Positions 2,205 through 55,101 of a DNA stretch of 64,000 bases are shown here, piece after piece. The notes below the pieces were generated by a model. The model made no database searches. It saw only the letters and a program-made list of their open reading frames with translations, and was not told where the DNA came from. Within the stretch, counting starts at the first letter, position 1, and each line of letters starts with the position of its first letter. The stretch covers positions 16,988,001 through 17,052,000 of the forward strand of contig NC_135760.1 in assembly GCF_052425735.1 (NCBI RefSeq), written 5' to 3'. The stretch comes from Oculina patagonica. Its lineage: Eukaryota. The position numbers and the translations under genes were made by a program.

Positions 2205-2247
<43 letters not shown>

Positions 2248-6111: not shown

Positions 6112-6142
<31 letters not shown>

Positions 6143-20549: not shown

Positions 20550-23500
20550 ATGGCGAGGAGTCCAATCAAAGTTGCAAGTGAGAATGACGTCACACTATCT
20601 GCTGAGGAAACCCTGGATTTTGATGACGACAATTTAAAAGGTGAAATAACGCAACTGAAAAAAGATTCCTTAATTGAAAATATAATTTCTAGTTCGAAGC
20701 GTGCTACATCACGGAAAATTGTTCGAGCAATTTTCACTTGAGTGTCGAAAGTAATTTGCGTTTGCTTTGGTTTAGCTTTAATAAGCCTTGTAACTGGTTA
20801 AAAACAAACAAAAACCGAGACCAATCTTGACTCTTTCAACGCAAGTTTCTCTGCGCTTCGATCCAGCCACATTTATTTGTTTCAATTTTGATTAGTTTAC
20901 TGGGTTGTCTGTGGCCTTTGTGTTTGGCCAGTGTTTACTTTGGTTTTAGTCTTACGACACTCAATCGAAAAATCGCTCAGGCTCTTTAAAGTAAAAAATA
21001 AAATTAATAAAATGTTTCAGCAGTGCAAAGACCATGTACCAATACTAACAATAATTCATTTCTTGTTCGATTCAGCGATAGCTGAGGTTTATAAGAATCA
21101 AGGTAATGAGGAATACAGAAAAAGAGATTTTATCAACGCCATTTACTTTTATACGGAAGGAATTAAAGTGAACTGCAAAGATGACAAACTGAAGGCAGAA
21201 TTGTACAGCAACAGGGCGATTGCAAATTTCAAATTGGGTGAGAATTGTTTGTATTTTGTGAGATTTTCTGTTTACATTTATCTTATCCTTAGAGTTTTTT
21301 AAATGTAAATGCTATTGATGTAGGGACATGTAATCTAGGCCTGCGATGTTCTCTTTTGTAGGTCGAAAGGCCTGTTCCGATAGCATTGAAATCAGGGCAA
21401 ATGCTTTACAAAACTGCCTTTTGAAATATTTTGCCACTTAATGTTAAATTAAATTCGTTTTTTCTCTACCTTTAATACCAAAGTCGGCATGCGTGATTTG
21501 TTATCTCATTTCGCTTCCCTGACAATGTGAGTCATCAGCCATGGTCATAGTTCATGATTCTTAACTAAAAGAAATTCCAATTAGAATAGCACAGTGTTAT
21601 GAAAACATTAAACCAGCGATATAAAAACGTTGACCAACGTTTTTATATCGCTTTGTTCATTTTACACAACCCGAGGATCGATCGGAGCCAAAGGGATATT
21701 TAAATTAGCCAAACGGAAAGTTGGGTTTTCTCACGTTTTAAAATCTGCAGTTTACTAGTTTTTTTTGTGCTGCATCATGGATAGTCATGCAATTTTGCCA
21801 GTGCAAAAAATATTTAAAACAATAATAATTTAAATTTAGTTCATTTCTTCGACAGGAAATTTTCTTGATTCACTGAGTGATGCAAAAGTTGCCACTGGTT
21901 TACAACCTATTTTCCTCAAAGCGATTGTTAGAGGTAAGCGAATGCTATGCTACATACAACAGAATGAAACAGAATGACGTCACGGCATAGTTTTGAAGGG
22001 CGACCTCAGTAGAGGCCATTCTTTGTAACATACTCCGCGCGCAGTTTCTGAAATCGGGAAACGTGACATTCTCCAGTCAAGGGGGGCGTGATTTCGTTTA
22101 TTTCGTATTTGTTTAGCTCGATTGTTCAATTTCAGCATTGGACCTTTCTGGAATGCTTTCAGGGGTACGTTTGTTTTGATCTAAGAAGGGATTTAAGTAC
22201 CGTTCGCAGAATGGTTTAAATGAATATGTACTCTAGTTCTAAAGAAAATATGGCGCTTAAATGGCTTTCAAGGATGTTACCATTACCAGCTATGGGCGCA
22301 TCCGGAATTAATAGTGGCACCTTATTACCTAAGAGGGTGGCCGTGGTTATTCCACATTTCATCATGAGAATGAAATCATCAACTGTCCACATCATGCCAT
22401 GTGACGCAAATGACCTCCGAGAATGAGAATAAAATGGGGGAATACAAATTATATTAAAGAGTACTGTCAGGAAAGATAAAATTAAATTTATTTTCCTAGA
22501 TAAATTTGAAAATTAATCTTTATGCATCCTTGCTCCTTCTTAATTAAAGACTACTTATTCGAAGTACCATGTGTGTGTTGCTTTGGCAGAGCTCTGTTTG
22601 CTGGGACAAAACAAAACTTCCCATTTTGGGATCTTTTTGGCCACAGGTGTGGCCGTTTATTTACATAACAGTGACAGAAAGATCACATTACAAAAAAATA
22701 AAAAGCATCAACCCAGCAAAGGTGAGGGGAAAACCGCCATACCATTGCAAAAGGTAAACGAAAACAGGGAGTGGTGGGAGGGGAAAATTGTCGTCGCTTG
22801 TTTAAGACATGTAACGAAAGAGAACTCACCACGCTTGCCCCGATTCTATATAAGGACACATGAAGAATATCCCGTATGGCCGGAAGTAATCCCCAGACCG
22901 GAAGTTGGTAGATGCATACGTCGCAAGCTGCATAAAATTATTTATTTCTACAAATAAATAGCATTTTTGCCCCCGAAGGATTTTGCCGTAGCGAAGGGTT
23001 AAAATTTATCTCTTATCTCTCTTCGTTTCCATCGACCAGCGGTCGGGAAACGAAGACCCTGGCAAGATCCAATTTAAAGTACGAAACTTTACTTTTTGCC
23101 GGGATCCTTGATTTTCCCCCGTGTTAAAATGTCCTTTAACTCTTATTGAGGCCAATTTCAGCTGATCTATTACATTGTTTTCCTCAGGAGCGAGTGCCTG
23201 TGTTGAGCTAAAGCAGTTTGAAGAAGCCATCAAGTGGTGTGATAAGGGATTAGCCGTATCCTTGACAATACGCTATGGACCTTTGGCCGCACCAAAACAC
23301 TGCGAAACTCGTAGAAATATACTTCCATACATGTGTACTACGCACTTAAATACCTAATTAACGCCCACGTCGCAAGTGGACGTTAGCTGCCCAAGGGCCC
23401 GGGGACTGCCATCGCAATCACACCCCAAAGGCGCCAGAACACCTGAGTGGCCTGTCCAACTCCCGCAACCCAGCCACGTGCCTCTTTTTTCGGCTCCCGG

Positions 23501-24253: not shown

Positions 24254-27200
24254 GTAAGACTAAGCTCTGATATTAAAGTACCTATGGAAGATTTTTTTTT
24301 CTTGTTCGAATCTACATTGGGTCCTGATATGAAAAGCGAAAAAAATTCCCGTAATGATCTTTCTTTACCGCGTTTTTGCCGTGAAAAAAAAAAACGTGAA
24401 ATTTTGCTTCCGGTCCCGTCAAATATCGCGCCAGGAGAAGAACTGGGTTGCTACCTGTCACCGGCAACACATTACCCTGGGTGCCCGAGGTTTTTATTGC
24501 GCGGTTTCCGATGTCGGTCATGTCGCAGCCTCCAGCTTTAATAAATTTTTTCGTGTTTAAAAAAAGGATTGGGGGTGATGATGATGATGACAAATTGTTC
24601 ATGATTTGATATTTTTTAAACCTTATTTAAACCTTTTTTCCACTGGTGTGCAGAGATTTTGCTACCAAAAACCAACGACATGCAAATCAAGCAACTTGTT
24701 GGAACTTTTTATCTTAATACAGGATGAAGACACAAAAGACGACACCAAAACAGCCAAAAAGAATGCTGTGAATGAAAGCGAGGTCACGGCATCTGTTGAT
24801 ATAGCATTGGAATTCGATGATGACAACTTAAGAGGTAAAAAATTAAAAGGTAAATAAATAAATAAAAAAACAGGAAAAATAATTGCGATAAAATGTGTAT
24901 GTCGTACAACACAACTGTGTGCGTAGTATCGCTGTACATCCAGGGTGCGAGCACGTAGGACGTGGCAAACTACCGATGACGCAAAAATATGCTGCGCCAG
25001 TGAAACTACAAAGTAAAATGTTTGAATAAGATAATTATGATCTATTATACCTTTCTTCATTTTGTTTTCGCCTGGCCAGAATGATTAAAAAGACCACAGG
25101 TAATTTGTTAAACCGGCAACCTAGAGCACAAATATGGTATACTGATAATTTTTGCTAGTTTCACGCGATATTTCAAATTTTTCTAAGTAGAAGTTGGGCA
25201 ATAAAAATAATTGTCTATTATTATTCTTTTTTCACTCTAAACATTGGAAAATAGAAATTTACAACATGCTATAAAACGGGACCATTTTCATATAAATAAA
25301 CAAATTATATTTTTATCATTAACAAATTATTATATAACAAATTATATTTTAAACATTTTGTTTTTCATTAGAAAAAGCAGAGATCTTCAAGTATAAAGGA
25401 AATCATGAGTGCAGTAAAAAGAATTTAAACAATGCCATTCACTTCTACACGGAAGGAATTAAAGTGAACTGCGAAGATGACGAACTAAATGCCAAACTTT
25501 ACAGTAACAGGGCAACAGCACATTTGCATTCGGGTAAGAGCAGTAAAAGAATTTTTTTGATTGTTGGTCGATCATTGCACCTGAGTAATATGTTTCTTTA
25601 TTTTAGAAATAATCTGCAATGTCCATGTTTTTTTGGGCCAAATTTCTTTCAACCATTGAGATGCTAAGATCACTCAAAGATACATCAAATATGTTCGGTG
25701 CAAGTGGTGAGAACAGCGAATTTATGGGTTGAGATATGCCCAGGGATGGGGAGGGGGTACTGGGGGTTTCAAGTGACGGGGATGATCGAATCAAGACCCC
25801 AGAAATCCCAAACCTCCAAAAATCCCTGGACCAAAAATTTAACTCCCGAAAAAGATCTCATGCTTAATTTCTGAGCGAATGATATAACACAAAGAAAAAA
25901 CTTTAGAAATTGAACGCTCTTGTTTGTTTATTTATCATACCGTCTGAATTAATCGGTTCCGTTTATTTGGTAGACATTTTAACAAAACTAGAGACATCCC
26001 AAAAAATCGTCTTTAACTATAAAACAACAGTAAAACACGTTTGTTTGTACTTTATTCGCAAAACTACGCAGTCAAGGCACTATCACGAATCTTAAGATTG
26101 TTTTTAATACCCCCAAAAATCCCCACTTAAATCAAGCCACTCAAACAAAATAATTGCCAAATCTCAGCTGAAACTTTTCCTACCCAAAAAAATCCAGGAA
26201 TCGAAAATTTCAAACCCAAAAATCGTTTGATCATCCCTGTCAAATGAAATCCCGAGTCCTTGCTCCCTCTGGGATATATGCAGCAGTATGATAAGCCATT
26301 GTTTTATGTTTGCGACACCGAATATATTTACACGTACATTATCAAAACATTGAGTAAAATAAACGAAAGGAGATGTCTTCTCACTTTTTTGGCTCTATTT
26401 CCCAACAGTGAAAAACCATTCATACGTTACTGCTCTGTCAGTTTCATTATACATATTCTTTCTAATTGTATTATATCAGGGAATTATGAAAATTCACTGA
26501 GAGATGCAAAAGCTGCCACTGACTTACAACCATCTTTCCTTAAAGCAATTGAGAGAGGTAAGCTGTTGACTACGCGCATGTGCAGAGTTGTTTTGGAGAC
26601 CAGATAGAGTTGCTTCCTCATATCTTGTTTGGTCAGAAATAATTAACTGGCAAAAATAAGAGCTAAAACTTAAGGGTTTAGCACGGCTTGTGTAACACGT
26701 TCCGTTTGGTCTACTAGTAGGAGACACAGAGACGGCTCTTCAGGAGTCAATCTATCGTGCTTTAATCAAGTTTCTTGCTATCGTGATCTTACACGTTCAG
26801 TAAGCTATCGAGAGTGTAAAATGTGAAAGTAATGCCAATCATATTATAATCAAATGTCACGTGAATCATATCAATGCCAATAAACAATCTATTGTGTCCA
26901 TATTGTAACATCCTTTCTCTTTTAGAAAAACAATAAAAAATACAATTTCGATTAACAAAATAACGAAACGCTAAAACATATAAGATATAATTATAAGCTC
27001 GACAATCATGCAATGTTCAATAGCACACATAGTCTTTAAAGCGTTCTGGAGGCCTTCGAACACGTGCAGGCCTCAGGCTCATTGGTGAGGGGGTTTCAGC
27101 TGGCTCTGGCGGCGGATTGGTTGCAGGAAGCGTTTCAGCTGGCTTGCTTGGCGCTGGGTTGCCTAGCGGAAACGGTTCATTGTGCTGTTGGATCATAGGT

Positions 27201-30200
27201 GGTTGCTCTTGGGTCTTTCGAAGGTGTACGCGGTTGCGACGGTACACTCCACCATCTGCTGTTTCAACTGTGTACGAGCGCTGGTCACGTTTCTCGATTA
27301 CCAGTGCTTTGCGCCACTTTTTCTCGCCTAGGCGGAGTGGTTTCATGCGCACTGTGTCACCCTTGTCGAGGGGATGGAGATCTTTGGCTGTGCGGTTGAA
27401 ATAGTGCTTCTGTTGATTTTGGCGCTCGACAAGTTTTGCTCGCTCATCAGATGGTTCGCTGGCTTGCGGTTTCAGAAGTTTGCTTGTTGCTGGTAGTAGG
27501 GTCTTTGTTCTCCGGCTCATAAGGCGCTGGGCTGGGCTGGATCCCACTCCTTGTGTAGGTGTGTTGCGATAGTCTAAGATCGCCAAGTAGGGGTCAGTAC
27601 CAGCTTCACATGCTTTGCGAAGGAGTCGCTTTGCTGTTTTTACGGCGGACTCGGCCTTTCCATTCGCTTTGCTGTTTCCTGGACTGATGGTGTTATGTTC
27701 AAATTCCCAGGTCTGAGCGAACGTGGCAAATTCTTTGCTGGAGAACTGTGGCCCATTGTCGGATACAACTGTATCTGGACATCCATATCTGGCAAAGTGG
27801 TTCTTGAGTTTCAAGACGACGGTGCTTGCCTTAGTGTCAGGTAGCTTGTCCACTTCCCAGAAGTTGCTGTAGTAGTCGACTGTCACTAGGTAACTCTTGT
27901 TTTTGAATTCGAAAAGGTCTGTTCCCACCTTTTCCCAGGGTCGTGATGGTACTTCATGTGGTAGGAGGGTTTCTTTCTGTTGACTGTTCTCAAACGTCCT
28001 ACAGGTTTCACATGCTTCGACTAGTTGCTTAATCTCTGCAGACATTCCGGGCCAGAAGATGTAGTCTCTCGCTCGTCGCAGACACGATTCGATTCCCATG
28101 TGCGAGGAGTGAATCTTGTTTTTCATCTCTTTCCGTAGAGTGGCAGGGATCACTAGCCTTTCTCCTTTAAAGATCAATCCGTCTTGGACTGTTAGCTCAT
28201 CTCTTATGCTGTAATATGGAGTCGCTTGTAACGGTAGATCGCCCTTGTCATCTGGCCATCCCTTAAGGATTAGGGACTTTACCACCAGCAGTGCTTGGTC
28301 AGTGTCTGTTTCTTGCCTGATTTCTTGTATCTTCCGGTCACTGATGGGGAGGGCCTTGACCATGTTTACTAACTCAAATTCTTTGTCGTCTTCTCGTCCT
28401 ACTTCAGGGAGGTATGCTCGGGACAACATATCAGCTATGTACATCTTCGCCCCACATTCATAGTGTACACTGATGTTGTATTTTTGAAGTCTCATCATCA
28501 TGCCTTGAAGTCGGCGAGGTGCGGATGATAGAGGCTTCTTTAGGATAGATTCTAGTGGCTTGTGGTCGCTTCTCACTGTGACTGGTCGTCCGAAGGTGTA
28601 CTGATGAAACTTTTCGAGAGAGAACACAATCGCCAACATTTCTTTTTCAATTTGGGCGTATCTCTCCTCAGTATCAGTGAGTGCACGGCTTGCATAGGCG
28701 ATTGGCTTTCCCTTTTGAAGGAGTGCAGCTCCGAGACCCTTTTGACTTGCGTCGCATTGTATCTCGAGCTCTGATTTGGGGTCGTAGTAGCTTAGGATAG
28801 GAGCCGTGGTCACAAGCCTCTTGATTTCCTCGAACGACTTCTCCTGTTCCTCAGTCCACTGCCATTCCACATCTTTTCTTGTTAGTCGCCGCAGTGGTTC
28901 CGTTACATCTGCCAATCCAGGTAAAAACTTCGCAAGATAATTGATGAATCCGTTAAGTCTTTGTATGCCTTCAACGTCTTCAGGTTTCGGCATTTCTTGA
29001 ATAGCTTTCGCTTTCTCTGGATCCATCTTCACACCGTGACTCGTTAGTATGTGACCCATGAAAGACACTTCTTTTTGCTTGAGCTTTAACTTATCTCTGT
29101 TAAGGGCAATGTTGCGCTCACGACATCTTTTCAGTAAAGCTTGGAGGTTCCTGTTGTGATCTGCGACTGCTTCTTGTTCGCTGTTTCCAACACCATATAC
29201 TAGGATGTCATCTGCGATGTTAAGAACACCGCTCAAGCCTTCTAGTGCTTGGTTTACTCGCTTCTGGAAGATTTCAGATGAGACTGACAAACCGAAGGGC
29301 AATCGGCACCAGCGGTATCTTCCAAATGGTGTTGCGAATGTCGTGAGTAGGCTTGACTCTTGATCGAGAACACAGTGCCAATATCCTGAACGCAGGTCGA
29401 CAGTGGAGAAGATTTTGGCTTGAGATAATTCCGGCAGAATTTCATCCAGTACAGGTATCTGGTATGTTTCTCTTTTCAGCGCCTCGTTCAATGGCCGTGG
29501 ATCGATACACACTCTCAGCGCACCTGATTTCTTAGTAGCGACTGCCAGACTGCTCACCCAGGGTGTTGGCTCTTCCACAGGTGCAAGGATTCCTTGTGTG
29601 ACGTATCGATTTAGTTCTGCTCTCAAGTCATCTTTTAGTGCCGTAGGAACTCGTCTCGTCGGGGTGATGACAGGTTTAACGCTATCGTCAACTTCTAAGT
29701 GGACTTCACCCGGAAAGGTTCCCAACGGACGGTCAAATACGTCTGTGTATTGCTTTATTACTTCTTCGGCTGTTATCTGTTTAATTTGTAGCTCATTTTC
29801 CTTTGAAGGAGGTGAGGCTGCGATGAAATTTTCGTCATGAACGGTGATTAGCCCCATTTGTTGAGCCGCTCTTGCGCCGATCAAAGGTGTTAGATTGCTT
29901 TCGACAACGACGAATTCTACGGAGTACTTCTTCCTTGTTTTCGGGTTACGCATGATGAGCCTTGTCGTTCCTATGGGTTTCACTTGAGATCCATTCCACA
30001 TTCGCAGAGTTTTCGTGGTCGGCTGGATTTCGTGACTTGTTGCGTGCTTCGCCGGGATGATGTTGATTGATGCTCCACAGTTAATTTGAAAGTTGACCTT
30101 TCTGTCATCGATAAGCATCTCAGCGTAAATTTCTTTAGCGTGACGAACAGCATTGACGTCAGACTCTTGAGAATCCATAGCAACTCCAGCTAGAAGCTCG

Positions 30201-36200: not shown

Positions 36201-39200
36201 TTTACAATGTCCAGCATACATGTCAAATGCATCATACTTGAAGGAAATGTTCCTGACAGTACAAATTGCTTAAGGACTTGACATTTCAAGGCGACACAAC
36301 TTGGTGATTGGTCGGGTAAGAGCAGTTCTCGTCACTTTGATTTCTCTTTCTCGTCGACGCTTTGCACGAGTCACAACAGTGCAACTTGTTAGCACCTTTG
36401 CAGAACGCACATATCCATCTTCACTCTCAAACACTTCCACAACTCGGGCTAATGGCCACTGACCTCTTGGGTAATTCTCATCTGCCAGAAGAACGAGTTC
36501 ACCAACCTTAAGGTTCTCTCTCGGTTCATTCCACTTCTTTCGTTCTTGGAGGGTAGGAAGATATTCCTTAATCCACCGTTTCCAGAATACACTTGCTAAG
36601 TACTGCGCTTGTCTCCACTGTCGTCTACAATGCAAATCCTCCTTCTCAAAGATTCCAGGGGGCAAACTGGCACATGGTCGCAGCTGCAACAGATGATTTG
36701 GTGTAAGGGGTTCTTCATCCATTGGGTCATCACTATTTCGTGTTAACGGCCTACTGTTTAGAATGTTAGTTGCTTCTGTTAGAACAGTCGACAACACTTC
36801 ATCGCATACCACCTGTTCTTTCAAAAGAGCCTTCAGGATTTGGCGTACAGACCTTATCATTCTCTCCCATGATCCCCCCATGTGACTTGCTGCAGGAGGG
36901 TTAAAGATCCATTCGATACCTCTTTGCGCACAAAACCCACTGATTGTTTGCTGATTCCACTCGTTAACAGCATCCTTAAGCTCCTTATCTGCTTTGGTAA
37001 AATTTGTGCCACAGTCACTGCGAATCTCTTTCGGGTATCCTCGGAGGTTAATGAATCTCCTCAGTGCATTGATCATGGAATCTGTATTCAGGCTATGTGC
37101 AACTTCCAAGTGTATAGCACGGACAGTTAAGCATGTGAATAGGCAACCCCAACGTTTAACTCGACTTCTTCCTTGCTTCACCTCTATAGGCCCAAAATAG
37201 TCCACACCAACATATGTGAAGGGAGGTTCATGTGGAGTAATTCTGTCTTCGGGCAACTTGGCCATAAACTGCTCTCCAGTGGGCGCTTTCCTTCTCTGGC
37301 AATCAAGACACTTCTTTAACACACGACGCACTGCAGAACGTCCCTTTACAACCCAGAACCTTTCCCTCAGGGACGTCAGAACGGATTCTTGACCGAGGTG
37401 GCCAACCTTAATGTGATGATACTGGATAATCAGTTCTGTGACATGGTGGTGACTGGGAAGGATAAATGGATGCTTCAAATCTTCATCTATTGGAGCACAC
37501 TCCAGTCTTCCACCAACTGACAACAACCCATTTCTCAACTTCGGATTCAACTTGAAAATCGAGGATCCCTCTTTCTTTATGACCCTCTTGATCTGTCGTT
37601 CACTTGAACCAGACGACATGTTGACGAGTGCCTTATACACATTTGGGAATGCCGACTTCTGCACCCGTCGAATTACTTCTTCTTCAGCCTTCTGAAGCTC
37701 AACGACTGTTAGGTTTCCAATTCTTACTTCTGGTTTGCCAGAAGGACAGCCATCATTAAGGGTAGCATCTTTCTTCTTACAAACTTTGCTTCGTATAAAC
37801 TGCTTGTAGCGTAACAGCCAAGCGAATGCTCTCTTCAGTTTCCACCAGGAAGAGTAGTGATGTATCAAGCTGTCAAATGGATCTTGTGCTACACTAGTAG
37901 CATAAATTCGACTTTCCTTTCTTACTTCAGCATCACTGTCCTTTAGCTCAGGTACTTCAATCACTGAAGGCCAGCAGTTTTCTTCTTTCCAGAGGAATGC
38001 AGGGCCATTCAACCACCGACTATTCCTTGTCATGTCATCAAGCCTTAACCCTTTTGATGCATCATCTGCTGGATTGTCGTCTCGGTTGACATATCTCCAG
38101 TCTGAAACGGATGATCCACTGCGAATGGCCGTGAGGCGATTTGACTCGAAGGTGTGGAACCGTTTAGAGTCATTGTTAAGGCATTTCAGCACTGTAGTAG
38201 AGTCAGTCCAATAATTCACTCGATCCACTTCAATTTCCAACTCTTCTCTGATTATTCCACTTAACTTAACAGAAATAACCGCGGCAGTTAACTCTAATCT
38301 CGGTATCGTTATTTCGTGAATGGGAGCCAATCGGGCTTTCCCCATAACAAAGCTGCAATGGATTTGGTCAAAGACATCAACAAGGCGTAAATAGGCTACT
38401 GCTCCGTACCCCACACGCGATCCATCTGAGAAAATGTGCAGCTGAACATTCTTGATTTCGCCAAAATGCTTTGGTTTGAAGCATCGGTCAACTTGGACTT
38501 CTTCCAACTTCAAAAGATCCTCCAGCCAATGAGACCACTGAACTTTGTCTTGTTCTTCTATCTCAGTATCCCAGCTCAACTTCCTCCGGCAGAGGTCTTG
38601 TAGTAAAAGTTTTCCTTTCATAACATAAGGGGCAATGAATCCTAACGGGTCAAACAACGAACTCACAAGTGAAAGGATACCACGTCTCGTCATTGGCTTT
38701 ACCTTGGCCAGAGTCTGAACTTTGGTTGACACATCCCAGACAAACTTGTCAGCTTCTATATTCCACTTCAATCCAAGGGCACATGCAGTTGGCAAGTCTT
38801 CTATGTCTAGGTTAACTACAGAACTTGCTCTCTCACACTCAGGAATCTCAACCAGTACATCTCTGTCATTGCTAAGCCACTTGGTTAACCTAAACCCTCC
38901 TTTCTTCAGTAGCTCTCGTAACTGTGTTGACAACTTTATTGCGGTTTCAGGAGAAGAAACAGATTTCATCAGGTCGTCAACGTACATGTTTCTCATCACA
39001 GTCTGAATTGTTTCAGGGTCAAACTCTTCCAGGCATGTCGACGCTGTCTTCTGTAGGCAGAAGTTGGCACCAAACAGGTGTTTCACCATGCGGTATTCTT
39101 CTGGTTCTTTCTCCAGGTCCCCATCAGGCCACCAAAGAAACCTCAACACATTGTTATCTTCGGGGTCAACATAGACTTGGTGGAACATAGCTTCTATATC

Positions 39201-42200
39201 GGCTGCAATAGCTATTGGCTCTTGCCGAAATCTAATCAACACTCCAACAAGCGGATTTGTCAAATCAGGGCCTTGCAATAATTGCTGATTCAAGGAGGTT
39301 CCACGATATTTCGCACCACAGTCAAATACAACTCTAACCTTCCCTGGCTTCAACGGGTGTGTCACAGGGTGATGTGGCAGGAACCAGACTGGTTTCTCTT
39401 TCAAATTCAGCTCTTCTGTTGGAACTTTCTGGGCATGACCTTTCATTATGTACTCTTGCATTGTGGTACGGTACTTCAGGAGTAGATCTTCATCCTTAAG
39501 GAGTCGCTTCTTTAGAAGTTGTAACCTCTGTTCCGCCACAGGTCTATTGTTTGGTAGTTCTGGGCATCCTTGTCGCCATGGCAATGCAACTTGGAAATGC
39601 TCTCCAACTCTTTGTAGGGATTCCTCCATTTTGTTCAAGGCTAACTTGTCTTCAACTGATGGTGAGACTGTTGTCCCAATCACAGAGTCTCCAAAATCTG
39701 TCTTCCAAAGCCGTTCAAGTTGCTGGTGCAGGGTATCATTGTCAATGTCACAGTCAATTAATTCTTCCTTTTCTTCCTTTAACGGAGGGAGATTTACAAC
39801 AGATCGCTGCTCTAGCCTCTCGATGGGTTCCCTGTGCTCAAAATTGCGAACACTCTCTGACCACATTGCAGTTTCGAATTTCACCCCAGTTTTGTCAATT
39901 GCCTTAGTCGAAGGATTCTCATGCAAACAACATCCGCCCAAATCCATGTCATCCGCAGATGTAACTCGGACAAAGTTCACCGAACAATGTTCATCTTCTT
40001 TGCGTTCACCCATCGGACCTATCACTGTCCACCCCAGGCTGTAACGGATAGCTATTGGCTCGTCGATTGCACCAGCTTTAAACTCTAATGGGAGGAAGAG
40101 ACTAGGCTTTTCTTTAAGACCAATCAACAACAAAACTTCTCTATTTCCAACTTCGGGAATGTCAATGCCTCGTAGGTGAGGCCAGCAAGCAAGATCTTCT
40201 TTCTTTGGAATACAACTTGGAGAGATAGGCATCTGTGCGACTGTCTTTACACTCGGTAACTCCACCACAACTGACTCATCCATAGACATTACAGTCAAGT
40301 CTACCACACGACTCTCCATCTGAGTTGAACCAGTCATTCCAGTCAGCGTAAAGTTAAGCCTTTCTCCTTCCAGCTCAAGTTTGTTAGCTAATCGTTCATG
40401 ACACAATGTCACCTCTGATCCATTATCAAGAAGGGCATATGTCTGAATAATCTCGTTGCCCTTCCCTCGAACCTTAACAGGGATAATTCCCAGACACACT
40501 CTTGTTTCTCCAGCCCCAGTAGCTGCCACAGCAATTCCATTTCCATCACCGGCCCCAGTAACGTCACCTGACCTAGCAGTCCCTTGACTTGGTTGCAAAT
40601 GTTGCTCTGCAATAGCAGCGGTTGCAAAGTTACTGTTTTGACTAGCAGTGTTTCTGTTCATACTGTTAAGGTCTCTTCGAATTCCAGCAGCGGGGCGATG
40701 CATCAGGGTATGGTGACTACCTCCACAACCAGGCCTTTGACACTTGAAATTTACTTTCGGGCACTCCTTGGCAATATGTCCCTTAACTAGACACTTATTA
40801 CACAGTCCACCACTTTGCACAATTTTCCACTTCTCTTCATAGGTGAGGCCTTTGAATTTACCACACTTCCAAACGTCATGCTGCTTTGTGCAAACTTGAC
40901 AAGGCGCGGGGGCATCCACAAATTTCGATCCTCTAGCATTCTCGTTTTGACCATCGCGAGTTGGTCCAGTTCCAGTGGCAAATGCTGACAGGCTTGGGAA
41001 GTTTCCACTTTGATTCATTTTGTTTCTTTTAGGAGGTGTCTCCTTCAAAGTTCCAGTAACCATATCTCGGCCAAACTCGTTGTCCACCAATTTAGCTCTT
41101 TCCTTGACAAATGCTACAAAGTCTTGAAACTTAGGTCTGCGGTCGGCTGCAATAATCCTCCCAGCACACTCGGTCCATCTCCCTCTTAGAAACATTGGCA
41201 ACTTCTTTGCGAGCTCTCGCAAAGTGTTCATGTGATTAAGATCAGACACAAATTCAGCACCTATGCCGCTCAAAGTTCGATCTGCGGTGTCCAAATGTCT
41301 GCTGAGCTCCAACAACGAAGGTCCATCCACACTCTTCATACAAGGCAGATTCAACAACTTCTTAACATGAGCCTCCGCAATCACATGCGGTTTTCCAAAG
41401 TTCTCCCGTAAGGTTTGTTTTGCTACTCGGTAACCATCGTTACGCAGATTTGAACAACTTTCGATAGCTTCCTTTGCCTTTCCTGTGCAGTGTTGTATGA
41501 GAAGTTGTAATCTCCTGGACTCATCCGGATTATCCCTTTCCAAATAGGTTTCAAAATTGTGCATAAAGGTGACGTACTTCAATGGATCACCATCAAACCG
41601 ATGATACTCAACCTTAGGTGAGGAAACTACCTGTCTCAAAGCCTTTACCATCTCTTAACCACTATCGAACTGCTCATTTGCTGGTTCTACTTTCACGACT
41701 GGCGGCACATAGGGTCGAGGCATCTGCCAAGAAGAGGACCAAGTTTCACTAACACGTTGTCCAACTGATGTCTGCCTGGGTTCAATTTTTGGCAAGGAAC
41801 TCCTACTTGTCACAAGGTTGGGAGGTGTACACTGTGGGTTTCGTATAATGGGTGCCGGCGCGGTCGACACATTTCCAGCCAAAGTAGTCAACGCCGGAAT
41901 AGAATCAGTTGGCTCCACAGATCCAGGACAAATTAAATCAACCTGTTCAGTCCTACGGGGTAAGGCTGCTCTCTGATTCGACAGGGTTGAAGTAACTATG
42001 GTTGTATTGTCTAAATGATCATTCACACTGACCTTTGAGCTATCTGGAATTTTACTCCTTTGTGAAGGCTCTAAATAACCCAGGAAGGATTTCTCGCGTG
42101 ATTGTTCCATGCTTTCCTCTTCATAAATCTGAAGAGAGACTGCCGCCCTTTCAGTCTCCATTTCTGCTTCTATTAGCTCCTTCTTCCTTCGAATTGCTTG

Positions 42201-45200
42201 CATTTCCTGTTCAAACTGCTGTCTAATCCCTAACTGTCGTAGATTCAATTGCGCCAGGGCCAATTTCTCCCTTTTTCTAGACACTGTAGACAATCTTGAA
42301 CTCGACGTGGAAACCCCACTTCGTCTGCTCCTTTGCGTTCCGCGAGAAAACTCACTATAGTTATCTCCTCGTTCGGGTTCTCTGTCCTTGTACCATAATC
42401 GTACGGTGAAGTCGAGATTGAGCTTTCGTTGTAGCTGTTCATCGTATGTCTTCTGTGTCTGTTCCAAAACAAGGGTGTCCATAAAAGGATCCAATAATTT
42501 CAGATAACTTTCGTGAGCGTCCACGAATTTACGCCAAGATTCATCAAATCTCGCATATTCCTTCGACACATCTTCACGACTTGCATCGCTTTCGGTAAGG
42601 TGAACAATTTCATTATAAACCTTCGTCAAATTTCCAATATGGGCGGCGCGTGATTTTTGAAGAGCGAGTTTCTTTTCGTTTAAGACGCCTTCCCTGTCTT
42701 GCATAACACTAGCTTGTCTATCCCTTGTGCTTCTCCTTTCTTCCATTCCATTTTGGTCGCTCGTACCATTAGCTGCGGTGTCGAAGAATCCATTCGCTTC
42801 CAGTGGCGATTCAGGTTGTTCGTCTGACATATTCCGTAAACACAACAAATCGTTTCGCCGTTCGCATTCCACACAATCCACCAAATTTCCAATTCCAATA
42901 ATTTCCAAGGCGAAGTAGTCGAAAACTGTTACACAGCCCAAGTGCTATGTAGTGATTCAAAGTCAAATTTAACGTCAAAAACTCAGAACTTTTAATACAT
43001 GATACGATCCAGGTTTCAAGATTACACTCTAACAATCCAGGTTCAGTTCAGGCATACCAACTATAGTTCAGGTTCTCTACAAATACAAATATGAACTAGT
43101 AAACATAGGAAACGAATCGAAGTACATGTAGGTACATTTTGCAAATAATATGACTCTTACCGACTGTTTCGTTAGGTCCAAAATGTTCAACAAGGTAAAG
43201 AAATAAAAACAACATGGCGAATCCAAGCGAGAACAACGCACATGGTTGGTCACGTGATGCAAATTCGTGACGTAATATAGGTCCGCACAACATGCACGCA
43301 ATGGTAGCTACAATAGACACTTTTGGCTTTGCCAGTGTAAATTGTCCATTTCAAATCATATGATGTCCCCAGTGAACTTGCTTTAAACTATCTGAACACC
43401 GAGAGAATTTGTTTGAATTTGAAAGAAGTGATTCTCAAGAGTCACATAGTCTGAAATGGGACAACCAAACGAAGCCCCAAAGGTCTATTCTCAGTTCTTT
43501 GTCTGTAATTTTTAACATACTGACTTGCTTTACGGGAAAGTCCTCGCCTTAGTATGCATTGCATACCAATTATTGTTTATCGTTCTCATGGAAATATCGA
43601 TTGCCTGAGTCTGGGAGGACTGCTGAACGACCATTTGAAAATGTTAGGGATAGTCCAGGAAAAACTGCATCGAGACACCTTAATTGGTGCAATTTTTAGA
43701 ATATGGCTAATTAAAGGTCAAATGAACCGAAATTTCAAAATGCCATTTTACCAACCAAACACTAAAACTAACCATTTTTTTGTAAAATAAATTATTATTT
43801 AGTAAAATAGCTTTCCGAGCCTTAAAGCGCGAATTACAGCAAAAAAAATATTCGAAAGCTTCACAACGTTTCTTGAATTACCGCGCACTGAAATGGAAGG
43901 GATGGAACGAGTTTGTGATGTCATAATTGGTGTTTTTGAAGACGACCGCAGACCGATTCCACTTATGTTCAGGATTGAACGCAAGTATCGTTAAATAAGT
44001 ACTCACGTTTGACTGTGTTATTTGACATCTCAATATTACTTCATATTTGACAGATTTTAGTGTGTTTTGGTGAACTTTTATTAATGAGGACACTTTGTGA
44101 TGCCTGCCGTTAGGAACGTGCATCTCATTAGCGTTTAATCCTGGACATATCTGATCGATTCCGCAGAGCGCACTGGTTGCCAAAGTTCGAGACAAAAGAG
44201 CGATTTCACAAACCTCGATTCTTACATGCTAATGAGAATCGTTAAATGCCAATGAGAAAGCACAATAGAGATTCCTGATTTGTTTTCATACCAGCGTGCA
44301 TACTACCTACGTCTCACGGGATACGCAAATCGACAGCAAACAAAACTTGAACTTTCTTGTGCTATTTTGGAGCTGTCTTGAAGCAAATATAATAAATGTG
44401 ATTTCCAACATCTGTTAATCTACCAGGTTAATGCATCACAATAAGAAAAGAGTAAACAGGAAAAGCGAAGCAGACCTTTAATATAAATAAATAGAAAGGT
44501 TGTCAATTGTTTTGACTGTTTATTTATCGGGGATTTGTACAAGTTCAATTTGCGTCCAGCAGTCGACGGCTTACAGTTAGAGTGTTCGTCAAATCACTGA
44601 AAAACAGTGATGAACAATTCTAGTATAAGTTCCTGAAGGTACAGCAAAACGAAACAAAACAGAACTGAGACACTTATCTCTAATTCAGAATAAATCAACG
44701 ACGGACGTAACAATAGTTCGTATAACTATACGAAACTATGCGAAACTAGACTGTGCGAAACACTAAACTACAATTTTTGAAATATGAAAAATAAATCAGT
44801 GTCGAGGCGTGGCCCTTTAGGCTGCACGGGGGCACACCACATTACCTAAGTTAAGTTCTCGCAGTTTTCTTTGTTAACAAATATTTCTTTCTTTCAGATC
44901 GGTGATTTGAAAAGTCCCAATACCAAAAGATTGGTTGACAAAGCGGAAGAAGCACTTTTGTGTGGCAATCTTGGAAAGGCTTTTCTAAGTTTCGGTGATT
45001 TCAGAAAAGCCATAGACTACTACGAATTGGATCTTAAAATCGCCAAAGAAGTAGGAGACAAGGCCGGCGAAGGAAGTGCCTATGGCAATCTTGGAAATGC
45101 TTTTCTAAGTCTCGGTGATTTCAGAAAAGCCATAGACTACTACGAATTGCATCTTAAAATCGCCAAAGAAGTAGGAGACAAGGCCGGCGAAGGACGTACC

Positions 45201-48200
45201 TATGGTAATCTTGGAATTGCTTTTAGTAATCTCGGTGATTTCAGAAAAGCCATAGACTACTACGAATTGGATCTTAAAATCGCCAAAGAAGTAGGAGACA
45301 AGGCCGGCGAAGGACGTACCTATGGTAATCTTGGAATTGCTTTTAGTAATCTCGGTGATTTCAGAAAAGCCATAGACTACTACGAATTGCATCTTAAAAT
45401 CGCCAAACAAGTAGGAGACAAGGCTGGCGAAGGCAATACCTATGGCAATCTTGGAAATGCTCTTCTAAGTCTCGGTGATTTCATAAAAGCCATAGACTAC
45501 TACGAATTGAATCTTAAAATCGCCAAAGAAGTAGGAGACAAGGCCGGCGAAGGACGTGTCTATGGCAATCTTGGAAATGCTTTTAGTAATCTCGGTGATT
45601 TCAGAAAAGCCATAGACTACTACGAATTGCATCTTAAAATCGCCAAAGAAGTAGGAGACAAGGCCGGCGAAGGACGTGCCTATGGTAATCTTGGAAATGC
45701 TTTTCTAAGTCTCGGTGATTTCAGAAAAGCCATAGACTACTACGAATTGGATCTTAAAATCGCCAAACAAGTAGGAGACAAGGCTGGCGAAGGACGTGTC
45801 TATGGCAATCTTGGAAATGCTCTTCTAAGTCTCGGTGATTTCAGAAAAGCCATAGACTACTACGAATTGCATCTTAAAATCGCCAAAGAAGTAGGAGACA
45901 AGGCCGGCGAAGGAGGTGTCTATGGCAATCTTGGAATTGCTTTTCGTAATCTCGGTGATTTCAGAAAAGCCATAGACTACTACGAATTGGATCTTAAAAT
46001 CGCCAAAGAAGTAGGAGACAAGGCCGGCGAAGGACGTGCCTATGGTAATCTTGGAAATGCTTTTAGTAATCTCAGTGATTTCAGAAAAGCCATAGACTAC
46101 TACGAATTGGATCTTAAAATCGCCAAACAAGTAGGAGACAAGGCTGGCGAAGGCAAAACCTATGGCAATCTTGGAAATGCTCTTCTAAGTCTCGGTGATT
46201 TCAGAAAAGCCATAGACTACTACGAATTGCATCTTAAAATCGCCAAAGAAGTAGGAGACAAGGCCGGCGAAGGAGGTGTCTATGGCAATCTTGGAAATGC
46301 TTTTAGTAATCTCGGTGATTTCAGAAAAGCCATAGACTACTACGAATTGCATCTTAAAATCGCCAAAGAAGTAGGAGACAAGGCCGGCGAAGGACGTGCC
46401 TATGGTAATCTTGGAAATGCTTTTCTAAGTCTCGGTGATTTCAGAAAAGCCATAGACTACTACGAATTGCGTCTTAAAATTGCCAAACAAGTAGGAGACA
46501 AGGCTGGCGAAGGCAATACCTATGGCAATCTTGGAAATGCTCTTCTAAGTCTCGGTGATTTCAGAAAAGCCATAGACTACTACGAATTGCATCTTAAAAT
46601 CGCCAAACAAGTAGGAGACAAGGCTGGCGAAGGCAATACCTATGGCAATCTTGGAAATGCTCTTCTAAGTCTCGGTGATTTCAGAAAAGCCATAGACTAC
46701 TACGAATTGCATCTTAAAATCGCCAAAGAAGTAGGAGACAAGGCCGGCGAAGCAAAGGCTTATGGCAATCTTGGAATTGCTTTTAGTAATTTCGGTGATT
46801 TCAGAAAAGCCATAGACTACTACGAATTGCATCTTAAAATCGCCAAAGAAGTAGGAGACAAGGCCGGTGAAGGAAGTGCCTATGGTAATCTAGGTTTCAG
46901 CTTCGAATCACAAGGTTTCTTATCCAAAGCCTTAGAATATTACGACCGTAGCGTAAGATTATTCAACCATGTGAGAAGCCTTCTTCAAAGTAATGATGAG
47001 TGGAAAATTGGCTATAGAAATGAAGTTGACTATGCATACACTGGTTTATGGAGAGTACTGCTAAAGCAAGGCAATATGGTTGAAGCTTTGCTTGCTGCTG
47101 AGAAAGGACGAGCCCAAGGTCTTACTGATCTTATGTTATTCCAATTTGGCATTAGAGAAAGCCAGTCCGTGTCACAGGAAGAAGACGAAGAGCAATATCT
47201 TCAACTGAAACGCTCTATTCCATCAAGTACAGTTTTTCAGGCATTTGACAGTGCTAAGATTCATCTCTGGGTTCTTTCAAAAGAAGGACCTGTTCGTGTA
47301 AGAGCGAAAGAAATTGGCGAGACCCATTCTGTATTAAATGATGCCACCGCCTTTTTTCAGTCGTTGATAAAAAATGCATTTAGAAAAATTCGCTTTTGCG
47401 CTGAGGTAAGATGCGAAAATCGTTCTTTGGATGCATTAAGAGAAAATCGTCACAAAGCGGATGACAATTCCGACAGGGAAAACTCTCAACCCTTCGACCT
47501 ACAAGAGATTTCTTTGAGCACCTTGTACAATATCTTGTTTCAGCCGATTGCCGATCTGGTTCAAGGTGATGAGCTAATCATTGTCCCACATGGACCACTG
47601 TGGCTAGCTCCTTATGCTGCATTGATGGATGCGGATTCTAAATACCTGTGTGAGTTGTTTAGAATCCGGTTGATTCCTTCGTTGACAAGCTTGAAGCTGA
47701 TTGCCGACTGCCCAGAGGACTACCATAGTAGGAGTGGTGCATTACTTGTGGGCGATCCATGGGTAGAAGAAGTTACCAACAGCAAGGGTGAAAAATTTCT
47801 GGATTCTCTTCCGTTCGCAAGAAAGGAGGTAGAAATGATCGGAAAGATTCTCAACGTGGCGCCTCTGATTGGAAAGAAAGCAACGAAACGCGAAGTGTTA
47901 AAAGGACTCAGTTCAGTTGCTTTAGTTCATATTGCAGCACATGGTCGCATGGAAACTGGTGAAATTGCTCTAACACCGGACTCACAGCAAGCATCTCGAA
48001 TCCCAACGAAGGAAGAAGATTACATTTTGAACATGTCAGATGTTCTGAGTGTTAAAGTGCAAGCGAGACTGGTTGTCCTTAGTTGCTGTCACAGCGGTCG
48101 AGGAGAGATCAAGGCTGAAGGTGTGGTCGGTATTGCACGTGCCTTTATGGGTGCTGGTGCTCGTTCTGTTCTGGTGTCACTATGGGCAATTGATGACGAA

Positions 48201-48383
48201 GCTACGCTGGAGTTTATGAGGAGTTTCTACCATCACCTTGTGGAAGGAAGTAGTGCAAGTGAGTCTCTGAACCTGGCCATGAAACATCTCAGAGAATCAG
48301 ACAAGTACAGTGATGTAAAATACTGGGCCCCTTTTGTACTTATTGGAGATGACGTCACTCTAGACTTTCATCGGAAGAAATGA
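20550..48383 (+). CDS. Copy B, complete spliced gene: 2x TTC4/Cns1-like TPR module + 16x40-aa TPR array + CHAT protease (~1507 aa; automated pipelines would probably call it 'TTC28-like')
   Basis: Phase-compatible exons: join(20550-20640,21076-21237,21856-21933,23188-23255,24161-24253,24723-24834,25372-25533,26480-26557,32013-32080,32592-32717,44898-48383) = 4524 nt, open throughout. ATG is in accATGG context with an in-frame TGA upstream (alternative ATG at 20532). All introns are GT..AG. Confidence 0.85.
20722..20978. mobile_element. Diverged copy of the ~285-bp short-TIR repeat (see 58726-59010)
   Basis: gagcaattttcacttgagtgtcgaaagtaatttgcgtttgctttgg is the reverse complement of the 58960-59010 end. 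Confidence 0.65.
23256..24160 (+). other. U12-type intron, copy B module 1
   Basis: 5' splice site GTATCCTTGAC; branch GTCTTAAC (24144-24151) followed by ccaaagaAG; joins GLA|IDK. Confidence 0.85.
24723..32717 (+). CDS. Copy B exons 6-10: TTC4/Cns1-like three-TPR module 2 (internal duplicate of module 1)
   Basis: Same core exon sizes (162, 78, 68 nt) and phases as module 1. Translation [20 protein letters not shown]...[23 protein letters not shown]...[57 protein letters not shown]. Confidence 0.8.
26691..31398 (-). mobile_element. Full-length Ty3/Gypsy LTR retrotransposon (Mag-like), in an intron of copy B
   Basis: Identical 220-bp TG..CA LTRs at 26691-26910 and 31179-31398. 5-bp TSD GCTTG (26686-26690 / 31399-31403). 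PBS TGGTGGCAGCG (tRNA-Leu-like 3' end) and PPT next to 26910. The empty site is at 808-812 in copy A. Confidence 0.97.
27017..31144 (-). CDS. Gypsy gag-pol polyprotein (1375 aa): Gag zinc knuckles, protease (D->N), RT, RNase H, integrase
   Basis: [17 protein letters not shown] knuckles; FQINCGAS; LPFGL..IADDIL; CDASQKGLG; HHCC plus [13 protein letters not shown] and KAESAVK. Domain order is PR-RT-RH-IN. Confidence 0.95.
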   Translation of the reverse strand: MVTTSSTATTSTTTTATAGTGTAPITHTTMSSPAHGLKPPGKLTTSGNLADAWKSYKQVWENYSLISGLNSQTEDYKVAFFLHCVGTEGLKIYNGFQFENETDKKILNKVLEKFDEFTLGQTNETYERYVFNSRNQEAQESIDAYVTALRNLVKSCNFCECMRDTLIRDRIVLGVRNNTMRKKLLQVRSLTLNKCIDICRSDEATATQLKAISGDDSVHKIRDWRRNFKKDKYPSRDTKNDRNVPPKPPGKSHKKCLFCGGEHPLKKEKCPAWGQKCSGCGGRNHFKSVCKKTKSRGVHGISDQPEDVSSEESDIELLAGVAMDSQESDVNAVRHAKEIYAEMLIDDRKVNFQINCGASINIIPAKHATSHEIQPTTKTLRMWNGSQVKPIGTTRLIMRNPKTRKKYSVEFVVVESNLTPLIGARAAQQMGLITVHDENFIAASPPSKENELQIKQITAEEVIKQYTDVFDRPLGTFPGEVHLEVDDSVKPVITPTRRVPTALKDDLRAELNRYVTQGILAPVEEPTPWVSSLAVATKKSGALRVCIDPRPLNEALKRETYQIPVLDEILPELSQAKIFSTVDLRSGYWHCVLDQESSLLTTFATPFGRYRWCRLPFGLSVSSEIFQKRVNQALEGLSGVLNIADDILVYGVGNSEQEAVADHNRNLQALLKRCRERNIALNRDKLKLKQKEVSFMGHILTSHGVKMDPEKAKAIQEMPKPEDVEGIQRLNGFINYLAKFLPGLADVTEPLRRLTRKDVEWQWTEEQEKSFEEIKRLVTTAPILSYYDPKSELEIQCDASQKGLGAALLQKGKPIAYASRALTDTEERYAQIEKEMLAIVFSLEKFHQYTFGRPVTVRSDHKPLESILKKPLSSAPRRLQGMMMRLQKYNISVHYECGAKMYIADMLSRAYLPEVGREDDKEFELVNMVKALPISDRKIQEIRQETDTDQALLVVKSLILKGWPDDKGDLPLQATPYYSIRDELTVQDGLIFKGERLVIPATLRKEMKNKIHSSHMGIESCLRRARDYIFWPGMSAEIKQLVEACETCRTFENSQQKETLLPHEVPSRPWEKVGTDLFEFKNKSYLVTVDYYSNFWEVDKLPDTKASTVVLKLKNHFARYGCPDTVVSDNGPQFSSKEFATFAQTWEFEHNTISPGNSKANGKAESAVKTAKRLLRKACEAGTDPYLAILDYRNTPTQGVGSSPAQRLMSRRTKTLLPATSKLLKPQASEPSDERAKLVERQNQQKHYFNRTAKDLHPLDKGDTVRMKPLRLGEKKWRKALVIEKRDQRSYTVETADGGVYRRNRVHLRKTQEQPPMIQQHNEPFPLGNPAPSKPAETLPATNPPPEPAETPSPMSLRPARVRRPPERFKDYVCY
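31481..31805. mobile_element. Copy-B-specific MITE-like insertion
   Basis: Absent at copy A ~905; rich in tgtcgc/gcgaca palindromic motifs; ends gtgtgtgccgacct. Confidence 0.5.
32081..32591 (+). other. U12-type intron, copy B module 2
   Basis: 5' splice site GTATCCTTTAC; TTTCTGAAC followed by tcgaaaaAG; joins GLA|IDE. Confidence 0.8.
32277..32530. repeat. Triplicated ~85-bp unit inside the U12 intron
   Basis: aatggac..cagc.gccaactgcaaaccaggc...ttgtcgaagatt occurs three times; copy A has a single unit (~1395-1468). Confidence 0.85.
35600..43312 (-). mobile_element. Full-length BEL/Pao LTR retrotransposon, in an intron of copy B
   Basis: Identical 386-bp LTRs at 35600-35985 and 42927-43312. 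6-bp TSD ATAGAC (35594-35599 / 43313-43318). PPT aggggccgg on the minus strand. Empty sites at ~4447 and ~53292. Confidence 0.97.
36270..42830 (-). pseudogene. BEL/Pao gag-pol, interrupted by an in-frame TAA (41655-41657) and an apparent 7-codon RT deletion
   Basis: ORFs 41655-42941 and 36270-41651 share a frame (GGT TAA GAG ATG). Motifs: triple Cys knuckle, ALLDNGS protease, NMYVDD RT, Pao RNase H (FSDGS..IPRLEL), integrase GVDYFGP/SDCGTNF/WERMIR. The start coordinate is approximate. Confidence 0.85.
44898..48383 (+). CDS. Copy B terminal coding exon: TPR array + CHAT (caspase HetF-associated with TPRs) peptidase domain
   Basis: Acceptor tttctttcag at 44897. The ORF has 16 GNLG...[11 protein letters not shown] units, then the CHAT motifs [24 protein letters not shown] (His 47940-47942), [10 protein letters not shown] (Cys 48087-48089), SLWAIDD and [10 protein letters not shown]. 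Confidence 0.95.
44964..46883 (+). repeat. Coding tandem repeat, 16 x 120 bp (40-aa TPR)
   Basis: Exact 120-nt periodicity is visible line by line. Confidence 0.95.
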
Positions 48384-54923: not shown

Positions 54924-55101
54924 NNNNNNNNNNNNNNNNNNNNNNNNNNNNNNNNNNNNNNNNNNNNNNNNNNNNNNNNNNNNNNNNNNNNNNNNNNNNN
55001 NNNNNNNNNNNNNNNNNNNNNNNNNNNNNNNNNNNNNNNNNNNNNNNNNNNNNNNNNNNNNNNNNNNNNNNNNNNNNNNNNNNNNNNNNNNNNNNNNNNN
55101 N
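54924..55101. other. Assembly gap (N run)
   Basis: 178 N. Confidence 1.

Follow-up and report, generated by a model that had tools for sequence, protein, structure and literature searches.

The locus considered here raises the question of how a coral gene that encodes a putative caspase-like protease came to carry, at its N-terminus, domains of the kind found in heat-shock co-chaperones, and what these domains might contribute to its function. The window that was analysed is a stretch of 64,000 nucleotides (nt) from Oculina patagonica (assembly GCF_052425735.1, contig NC_135760.1, positions 16,988,001 to 17,052,000 of the forward strand). It contains the gene LOC144646972 (17,008,532–17,036,383 on the 29.98 Mb chromosome CM126637.1), whose RefSeq product (P0001), described as "uncharacterized", is a protein of 1507 amino acids (aa), the C-terminal part of which is 100% identical to the large open reading frame (ORF) at 44871–48383 of the window. 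In this protein, two modules of three tetratricopeptide repeats (TPRs) are followed by 17 TPRs of forty residues each and then by a CHAT domain. LOC144646972, which is intact, spliced and of cytosolic type, is a member of the TPR-CHAT ("TTC28-like") family that is expanded in scleractinian corals, and within this family it belongs to a subfamily of chimeric origin. The exon block encoding the 3-TPR clamp of TTC4, its U12-type intron included, was copied in front of a TTC28-type exon that encodes a TPR array plus CHAT. A subsequent tandem duplication of this block, which comprises five exons (a linker exon and four module exons), has resulted in two modules in LOC144646972 and three in a nearby paralog (P0002).

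The initial annotation had assigned the N-terminal modules to the TTC4/Cns1 type, and this assignment is borne out by similarity scores, by a separate phylogeny of the modules and by a common exon structure that includes the U12-type intron. In an exhaustive search over 1.84 billion representatives, the matches of which were rescored per domain, the best matches without CHAT were proteins of ~390 aa in which one domain alone accounts for the match (86–116 bits, 40–48% identity). The module matches whose names were looked up, from duck, pika, sea urchin and Nematostella, are named TTC4, and the Cns1/TTC4 Wheel domain was present in 17 of the 39 module matches sampled. The TPR domains of cnidarian TTC4 proteins scored 116–144 bits against the modules, with those from scleractinians at the top, as compared with 40–58 bits per domain for Hop-like TPRs. 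Among proteins of known structure, module 1 matched in sequence the Hsp70/Hsp90 clamp TPRs of Hop/STIP1, SPAG1, Cns1, Sti1, SGTA, RPAP3 and PP5. A Hop/Sti1-like identity of the modules, which the top PDB match would indicate, was rejected, because that score sums several domains and the per-domain score of TTC4 is ~2 times higher. Grouping of the modules with the N-terminal TPRs of TTC28 appears unlikely, because no canonical TTC28 was present among the best 150 representatives matching the module, which included 22 TTC4 proteins; the large TPR proteins that were checked among the module matches were kinase, RPAP3-like and glycosyltransferase proteins and not TTC28.

In maximum likelihood trees, the TPRs of TTC4 and all of the CHAT-linked modules formed one clade as against those of Hop, DnaJC7-like proteins and other clamp TPRs, and this joint clade was recovered in three trees (support by the Shimodaira–Hasegawa-like approximate likelihood ratio test (SH-aLRT) of 99 in one of them, and support of 100/98 and 100/99 in the other two). 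In one tree, the modules from six coral genera were placed on one side of a branch (78/69), a pattern that is consistent with a single capture of the TTC4 block, although it is not proof of it. The best tree grouped all Wheel-bearing TTC4 proteins together with a support of 82/83, and a tree in which the modules were forced to branch beside scleractinian TTC4 was not rejected by the approximately unbiased test (p-AU 0.25).

The relationship to TTC4 extends to the structure of the gene. The linker exon and the first three module exons of LOC144646972 are 112, 162, 78 and 68 nt in length with phases 0/1/1/1, and the intron that follows the 68-nt exon has the 5' end GTATCCTT. In the canonical TTC4 of Oculina (P0327), which is retained as a separate gene on another chromosome, the corresponding exons are 115, 162, 78 and 68 nt, with the same phases and the same intron 5' end (GTATCCTT), and in TTC4 of Nematostella (RefSeq P0323) they are 112, 162, 78 and 68 nt, again with phases 0/1/1/1, the intron starting with ATATCCTT and ending in AC. 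Linker exon 6 of LOC144646972 is positionally equivalent to exon 2 of TTC4, which is the exon of 112 nt in Nematostella and 115 nt in Oculina. The older Nematostella model EDO45141 mis-annotated the region of the 68-nt exon, and it is the newer RefSeq model that has the AT-AC intron.

The sequence RTATCCTT is the consensus for the 5' splice site of U12-type introns, which are spliced by the minor spliceosome. Only two occurrences of it are found in the region 20000–45000 of the window, both exactly at the ends of the 68-nt exons of the modules, and it recurs where the homologous exon of a paralog located upstream in the window ends (1179). A polypyrimidine tract is lacking in both of the module introns that start at these sites, and in each the 3' splice site is preceded at ~10 nt by a branch-site-like element. 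A U12-type intron is present at the equivalent position in canonical TTC4 from both Oculina and Nematostella and in every TTC4-derived module, further examples being those in L009 (from 6112) and L006 (3759–3979), and every extra module means one more U12-type intron in the gene. Because the exon lengths, the phases and the U12-type intron all match, the modules are DNA-level copies of the TTC4 exon block, and the same three features exclude an origin of the modules as retrocopies or as convergent TPRs. With the conserved U12-type intron as a tracer, the fusion is a clean case of exon shuffling. Within the U12-type intron of module 2, an 86-nt unit is repeated in three tandem copies (93% matches; window 32270–32529).

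The Wheel domain (PF18972), which bona fide TTC4 proteins have, gave no match in residues 1–360 of P0001 or in the large exon, and due to its absence the modules are regarded as a TTC4-derived domain and not as a TTC4 orthologue. The residues of the dicarboxylate clamp have been kept. K37, N41, N76, K106 and R110 of module 1 align with K8, N12, N43, K73 and R77 of Hop TPR1, and the K-N-N-K-R set is complete in both modules of LOC144646972 and likewise in the three that P0002 carries; among 18 modules sampled from the family, four of the clamp positions are kept in 15–17. Based upon these residues, the clamps of both modules are predicted to bind the EEVD tails of Hsp70/Hsp90, and the front end copied from TTC4 suggests, without being proof of it, a docking of the protease on heat-shock chaperones. 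An acidic motif, L[DE]FDDDNL, is found immediately before each clamp module (window 20613–20636 and 24808–24831; residues 22–29 and 193–200 of P0001); the clamp might bind it within the protein, or it might be recognised by another partner.

That the modules and the protease belong to one gene is supported by an exact spliced mapping, in which P0001 was reproduced residue for residue from 11 exons in the window, with every intron of the GT-AG form. The initial annotation had proposed that ten small exons are spliced onto the large TPR-CHAT exon, and the junction in question (32717|44898) agrees exactly with the RefSeq model; exons 10 and 11 are joined in phase 0 with the frame maintained, and the acceptor is strong. 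Between residue 1 and residue 1073, P0001 contains no Met, and in the absence of an in-frame Met before this residue the large exon would be unable to express the TPR array alone. Neither a signal peptide-like nor a transmembrane-like stretch was found in P0001, and its Pfam matches include no NTPase family (NACHT, NB-ARC), which sets it apart from receptors of the NLR (nucleotide-binding, leucine-rich repeat) or STAND (signal transduction ATPases with numerous domains) type. The fusion was also observed in contigs assembled from public sequencing runs. One of these (L007, 6159 nt) has a single ORF of 1254 aa that joins module, TPR array and CHAT, another (L002, 3425 nt) has an ORF of 559 aa and, after it, a CHAT ORF of 331 aa, and L004 and L005, from two independent runs, have continuous ORFs from module to CHAT without introns. 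Since each module is split over four exons in the genomic DNA of Oculina, the only genome in which module exons were mapped, these intron-free contigs are most simply explained as spliced mRNAs, and this is what the contigs with continuous ORFs look like.

The TPR array of LOC144646972, which is matched by the Pfam families TPR_12 (PF13424; 1.4e-145) and TPR_7 (PF13176; 1.2e-121), is composed of 15 near-identical units and two degenerate units at its ends. It had been described in the initial annotation as hypervariable, and variation does occur, confined to eight positions of the unit (viz. 6, 7, 13, 15, 16, 17, 31 and 37), but a broad hypervariability is contradicted by an identity of ~92% among the units at the DNA level, and the array is better described as a set of repeat-variable positions on a homogenised scaffold. 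Much of the apparent variation reflects block duplication, as a few unit types recur within the array, and a crude estimate of the ratio of nonsynonymous to synonymous change among the units is ~0.8. When the LG of GNLG is set at canonical TPR positions 7–8, unit positions 6, 13, 16 and 17 correspond to canonical positions 2, 9, 12 and 13, which are helix-A residues that line the concave groove.

The presence in the CHAT domain of an intact His/Cys dyad, another claim of the initial annotation, was confirmed by comparison with the best 120 of 4022 homologs, where the residue corresponding to His1361 is His in 118 and that corresponding to Cys1410 is Cys in 119. In an alignment to the solved bacterial CHAT protein 8rot_B, AAHG and SCCHSG coincide with its HG and C; 8rot_B was the only match, and a weak one (E 0.0016), in a PDB sequence search with the CHAT half of the protein. 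An AlphaFold (AF2) model of this half based upon the single sequence was unusable (pLDDT 36.7), and the prediction was repeated with a 67-row alignment, giving a pLDDT of 83.5 and a pTM of 0.88. The solved structures nearest to this model by Foldseek are separases, Craspase Csx29, DdvA CHAT and SAVED-CHAT, followed by gingipains and caspases. Among reviewed proteins, the model is closest to TTC28 (TM 0.72 by query, 23% identity, E 2.8e-32), which ranks ahead of separases and of the CHAT proteases encoded together with bacterial gasdermins. From its sequence, the CHAT of LOC144646972 is predicted to be an active protease. As the modules are derived from TTC4 and the CHAT half is structurally nearest to TTC28, the protein is a chimera, of TTC4 type at its front and of TTC28 type at its back.

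LOC144646972 can be compared to several known systems. With TTC4/Cns1 it has in common the 3-TPR clamp, which is nearest to the modules by both score and tree, as well as the exon lengths, phases, U12-type intron and five clamp residues, but it differs in the lack of the Wheel domain and of the N-terminal region of TTC4 and in that its clamp domain is tandemly duplicated and fused to a protease. Vertebrate TTC28 (TPRBK) provides the best structural match to the linker-plus-CHAT half, and in both proteins TPR arrays precede CHAT. However, TTC28 is a single-copy gene for a protein of ~2450–2480 aa, whereas LOC144646972 is shorter, multi-copy and has a TTC4-type N-terminus, and it is not an orthologue of canonical TTC28, which only its CHAT half resembles. 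Csx29 of the type III-E Craspase, the gasdermin-paired CHAT proteases, SAVED-CHAT and separase share with it a clan-CD fold preceded by a pseudo-protease and a helical region, a His/Cys dyad and a TPR region before CHAT (Foldseek E values of 1e-13 to 1e-7 against bacterial TPR-CHAT proteases and separase), but the identity is 11–15% and no CRISPR, cyclic-nucleotide or securin partner is found at the LOC144646972 locus. The coral TPR-CHAT family itself shows the same TPR_12/TPR_7 array followed by one C-terminal CHAT, with tandem duplicates and variability in both copy number and TPR length, the difference being that the papers on this family, in their accessible parts, describe only "TPR + CHAT" and LOC144646972 adds the TTC4-type clamps.

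The fusion of module, TPR array and CHAT is annotated on at least five chromosomes of Oculina and also in Pocillopora, Stylophora, Montipora, Acropora and Porites, which together represent both of the major scleractinian clades; at E <= 1e-10 it was not found outside Scleractinia. The CHAT of LOC144646972 is 60–96% identical to that of many annotated coral members. In reef-building corals, few families are as expanded or vary as much in copy number as the TPR-CHAT genes. Their tandem expansion, with 6 to 362 genes per genome, variable TPR length and copy numbers that differ between haplotypes, is reported in a recent study (PMC12314368), and the same expansion was described earlier under the name "TTC28-like" (PMC9145168). 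Additionally, 56 TTC28-like genes are listed as differentially expressed in an experiment combining heat stress with probiotics (PMC10668361). The accessible parts of these three papers (PMC12314368, PMC9145168 and PMC10668361) make no mention of a co-chaperone-type clamp, of TTC4 or of catalytic residues, and only irrelevant papers were retrieved when the literature was searched for TTC4 and CHAT in combination. The suggestion in the initial annotation that this is an undescribed system holds only in part: the TPR-CHAT expansion has been published (PMC12314368, PMC9145168), and the gene is in RefSeq, but the TTC4-clamp fusion is missing from the searchable literature and seems to have remained undescribed so far. 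The accompanying remark that the automatic label "TTC28-like" masks the chimeric architecture is justified, as relatives of the gene are so labelled and its C-terminal half is structurally nearest to TTC28. Automatic names nevertheless offer a hint of the fusion, a CHAT protein of 1047 aa being named "Tetratricopeptide repeat protein 4 [Porites harrisoni]" and a module-only model from Pocillopora "TTC4-like".

These observations are best explained, in our assessment with somewhat better than even confidence, by a chimeric TTC4/TTC28-type gene in which the clamps dock on chaperones, the array binds a ligand or substrate and CHAT is an active protease. These three activities are proposed by analogy with proteins of known function. 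Through its two clamp modules, the large repeat protein would be tethered to the C-terminal EEVD tails of Hsp70 and/or Hsp90, and this tether would hold it in a folded and latent state, as SGT1-HSP90 does in trans for NLR receptors. The 40-residue TPR array would bind a ligand or substrate, mainly by means of variable residues at the helix-A groove positions, and CHAT (His1361/Cys1410), acting as a protease of the caspase/separase clan, would cleave at least one target once engaged. In the SGT1-HSP90 system, a TPR co-chaperone couples a large repeat-containing NLR sensor to Hsp90. The analogy is a functional one only, for the co-chaperone of that system is separate from the NTPase receptor on which it acts (in trans), whereas the clamp of LOC144646972 lies in cis on a protease without NACHT or NB-ARC.

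Several observations weigh against this explanation, some of which bear upon docking and others upon the gene itself. The first clamp lysine is K in 10 of the 18 sampled family modules and R in 4, and because the clamp is not always kept across the family, chaperone docking may be dispensable. Clamp-type TPRs are able to bind other acidic C-termini, and the Wheel domain that carries the client function of TTC4/Cns1 itself is absent from LOC144646972. It is conceivable that the TTC4-derived modules no longer dock on chaperones and serve as extra peptide-binding TPRs for some other acidic C-terminus or internal motif, or as an extension of the scaffold, in which case the protein would work like any other coral TPR-CHAT protein. 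The loss of Wheel and the differences in clamp residues among some paralogs point in this direction, as does the lack of modules in many family members and in the RefSeq models P0008, P0010 and P0014. However, the completeness of the five clamp residues in LOC144646972 and P0002, and the retention and duplication of the modules since before the split of the two scleractinian clades, argue against it, and we regard a loss of docking as unlikely, albeit deserving of real weight.

With regard to the gene itself, the reading of the intron-free contigs as spliced mRNAs depends upon the library type of the runs from which they derive, and at a related locus (L003; CM126637.1:20,304,305–20,323,636) the submitter annotation separates the module exons from the TPR-CHAT ORF, calling a module product of 309 aa, with exons skipped, and a separate TPR-CHAT ORF of 843 aa. 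Due to split models of this kind, counts of the "TPR+CHAT" family miss or mis-describe the clamp-bearing subfamily. Such models, together with the length of intron 10 (12.2 kb, with a retrotransposon inside it), could indicate that in LOC144646972 also automated annotation has wrongly merged two genes, one with the N-terminal exons and one with the TPR-CHAT exon. This is hardly credible in view of the in-frame, phase 0 join with its strong acceptor, the lack of a Met before residue 1073 in the large exon, the module-array-CHAT ORFs that run continuously on intron-free contigs from several runs and the annotation of the fused architecture in six genera; moreover, intron 10 without its retrotransposon matches the 4.7-kb intron of the upstream paralog. 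The two young intronic retrotransposons could also impair the expression of LOC144646972, and the gene might be a recently inactivated, functionless copy in a cluster of fast turnover, silenced or mis-spliced by these elements. The adjoining paralog is already broken by two frameshifts, the identical LTRs (long terminal repeats) and intact ORFs of both elements indicate very recent insertions, and copy-number turnover in the coral family is rapid according to published work (PMC12314368). All 1507 of 1507 codons are nevertheless open, the ten pairs of splice sites and the clamp and dyad residues are intact, and both insertions are antisense and intronic, which makes inactivation quite improbable.

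The chimeric gene with docking clamps, ligand-binding array and active CHAT can also be given a more specific form, which we consider speculative and rather improbable. In this form, the binding of Hsp70/Hsp90 tails to the TTC4-type clamps would gate CHAT, and titration of free chaperone by proteotoxic (heat) stress, or an attack upon it by a pathogen, would free the protease to cut cell-death or immune substrates. If this were so, corals would hold a multigene family of chaperone-guarded, caspase-like switches connecting thermal stress to cell death or bleaching, in which the array residues would tune the choice of ligand or substrate and the one U12-type intron per module would be an added splicing checkpoint. 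The clamp-bearing subfamily thus provides a concrete hypothesis of chaperone-tethered or chaperone-gated proteolysis in animals that are threatened mainly by heat stress.

Table 1. Features of LOC144646972 and of its surroundings, with positions in the window.
Feature	Position	Strand	Details
LOC144646972, coding range	20550..48383	+	11 exons, 1507 codons + stop
Exons 1–5	20550-20640, 21076-21237, 21856-21933, 23188-23255, 24161-24253	+	exact spliced mapping
Exons 6–10	24723-24834, 25372-25533, 26480-26557, 32013-32080, 32592-32717	+	exact spliced mapping
Exon 1	20550..20640	+	start codon and acidic motif LDFDDDNL; homologous to linker exon 6
TTC4-type clamp module 1	21076..24253	+	exons 2–5, 162/78/68/93 nt
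U12-type intron, module 1	23256..24160	+	5' splice site GTATCCTT; branch-site-like TCTTAAC ~11 nt from 3' splice site
Linker exon 6	24723..24834	+	112 nt, phase 0, carries LEFDDDNL
TTC4-type clamp module 2	25372..32717	+	exons 7–10, 162/78/68/126 nt; clamp K-N-N-K-R intact
U12-type intron, module 2	32081..32591	+	5' splice site GTATCCTT
Exon 11 (large)	44898..48383	+	TPR array, helical and pseudo-protease linker, CHAT domain
TPR array	44940..46979	+	17 units, each exactly 40 aa (120 nt)
CHAT domain (PF12770), caspase/separase-like fold	47511..48350	+	Pfam E 3.5e-57 over whole profile
Predicted catalytic His1361 codon	47940..47942	+	motif AAHG
Predicted catalytic Cys1410 codon	48087..48089	+	second Cys of SCCHSG
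Ty3/gypsy LTR retrotransposon, intron 8	26691..31398	-	intact 1375-aa gag-pol ORF 27017-31144
BEL/Pao LTR retrotransposon, intron 10	35598..43224	-	ORFs of 1793 aa (36270-41651) and 428 aa (41655-42941)
Upstream paralog, 5' part outside window	600..9650	+	exons 600-677, 1111-1178, 1530-1655, 6403-9650

The locus arose by tandem segmental duplication, the whole gene having been amplified later than the exon block within it. The initial annotation had reported a second paralog immediately upstream and a tandem amplification, and the paralog is indeed a segmental duplicate, collinear with LOC144646972 at 86–94% identity, introns included. A GT donor and an AG acceptor are present at its proposed junction 1655|6403, and its exon 1111–1178 directly precedes GTATCCTT at 1179. 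Its TPR array is broken, however, by two +1 frameshifts, which result from units of 121 nt at 6829 and 6950, and no annotated protein among the best 120 of 4022 homologs matches it at more than 94.7%; it is probably a pseudogene. Homopolymer errors were rejected as the source of these frameshifts, because the 121-nt units are chimeric for the "SN/CN" and "LS" unit types and do not differ in the length of T-runs. The two units (window 6829–7070; …AGTAAGTCTCGG / …TGTAAGTCTCGG) look like a chimera of "SN/CN" and "LS" repeat types that is out of register by one base, an arrangement more readily ascribed to recombination between repeats or to gene conversion than to a sequencing error. Further paralogs are located on the same chromosome at 16.89 Mb (P0002, with its three modules) and 20.30 Mb.

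The homology between LOC144646972 and the upstream paralog breaks exactly at the two LTR retrotransposons. Both of these are apparently complete, lie antisense to the gene and are absent from the paralog, and the two LTRs of each are 100% identical (26691–26910 and 31179–31398 for the Ty3/gypsy element; 35598–35897 and 42925–43224 for BEL/Pao). Because of this identity and of their absence from the paralog, both were inserted very recently, after the duplication. Downstream of LOC144646972, a run of 178 N (window 54924–55101) marks an assembly gap or a masked stretch.

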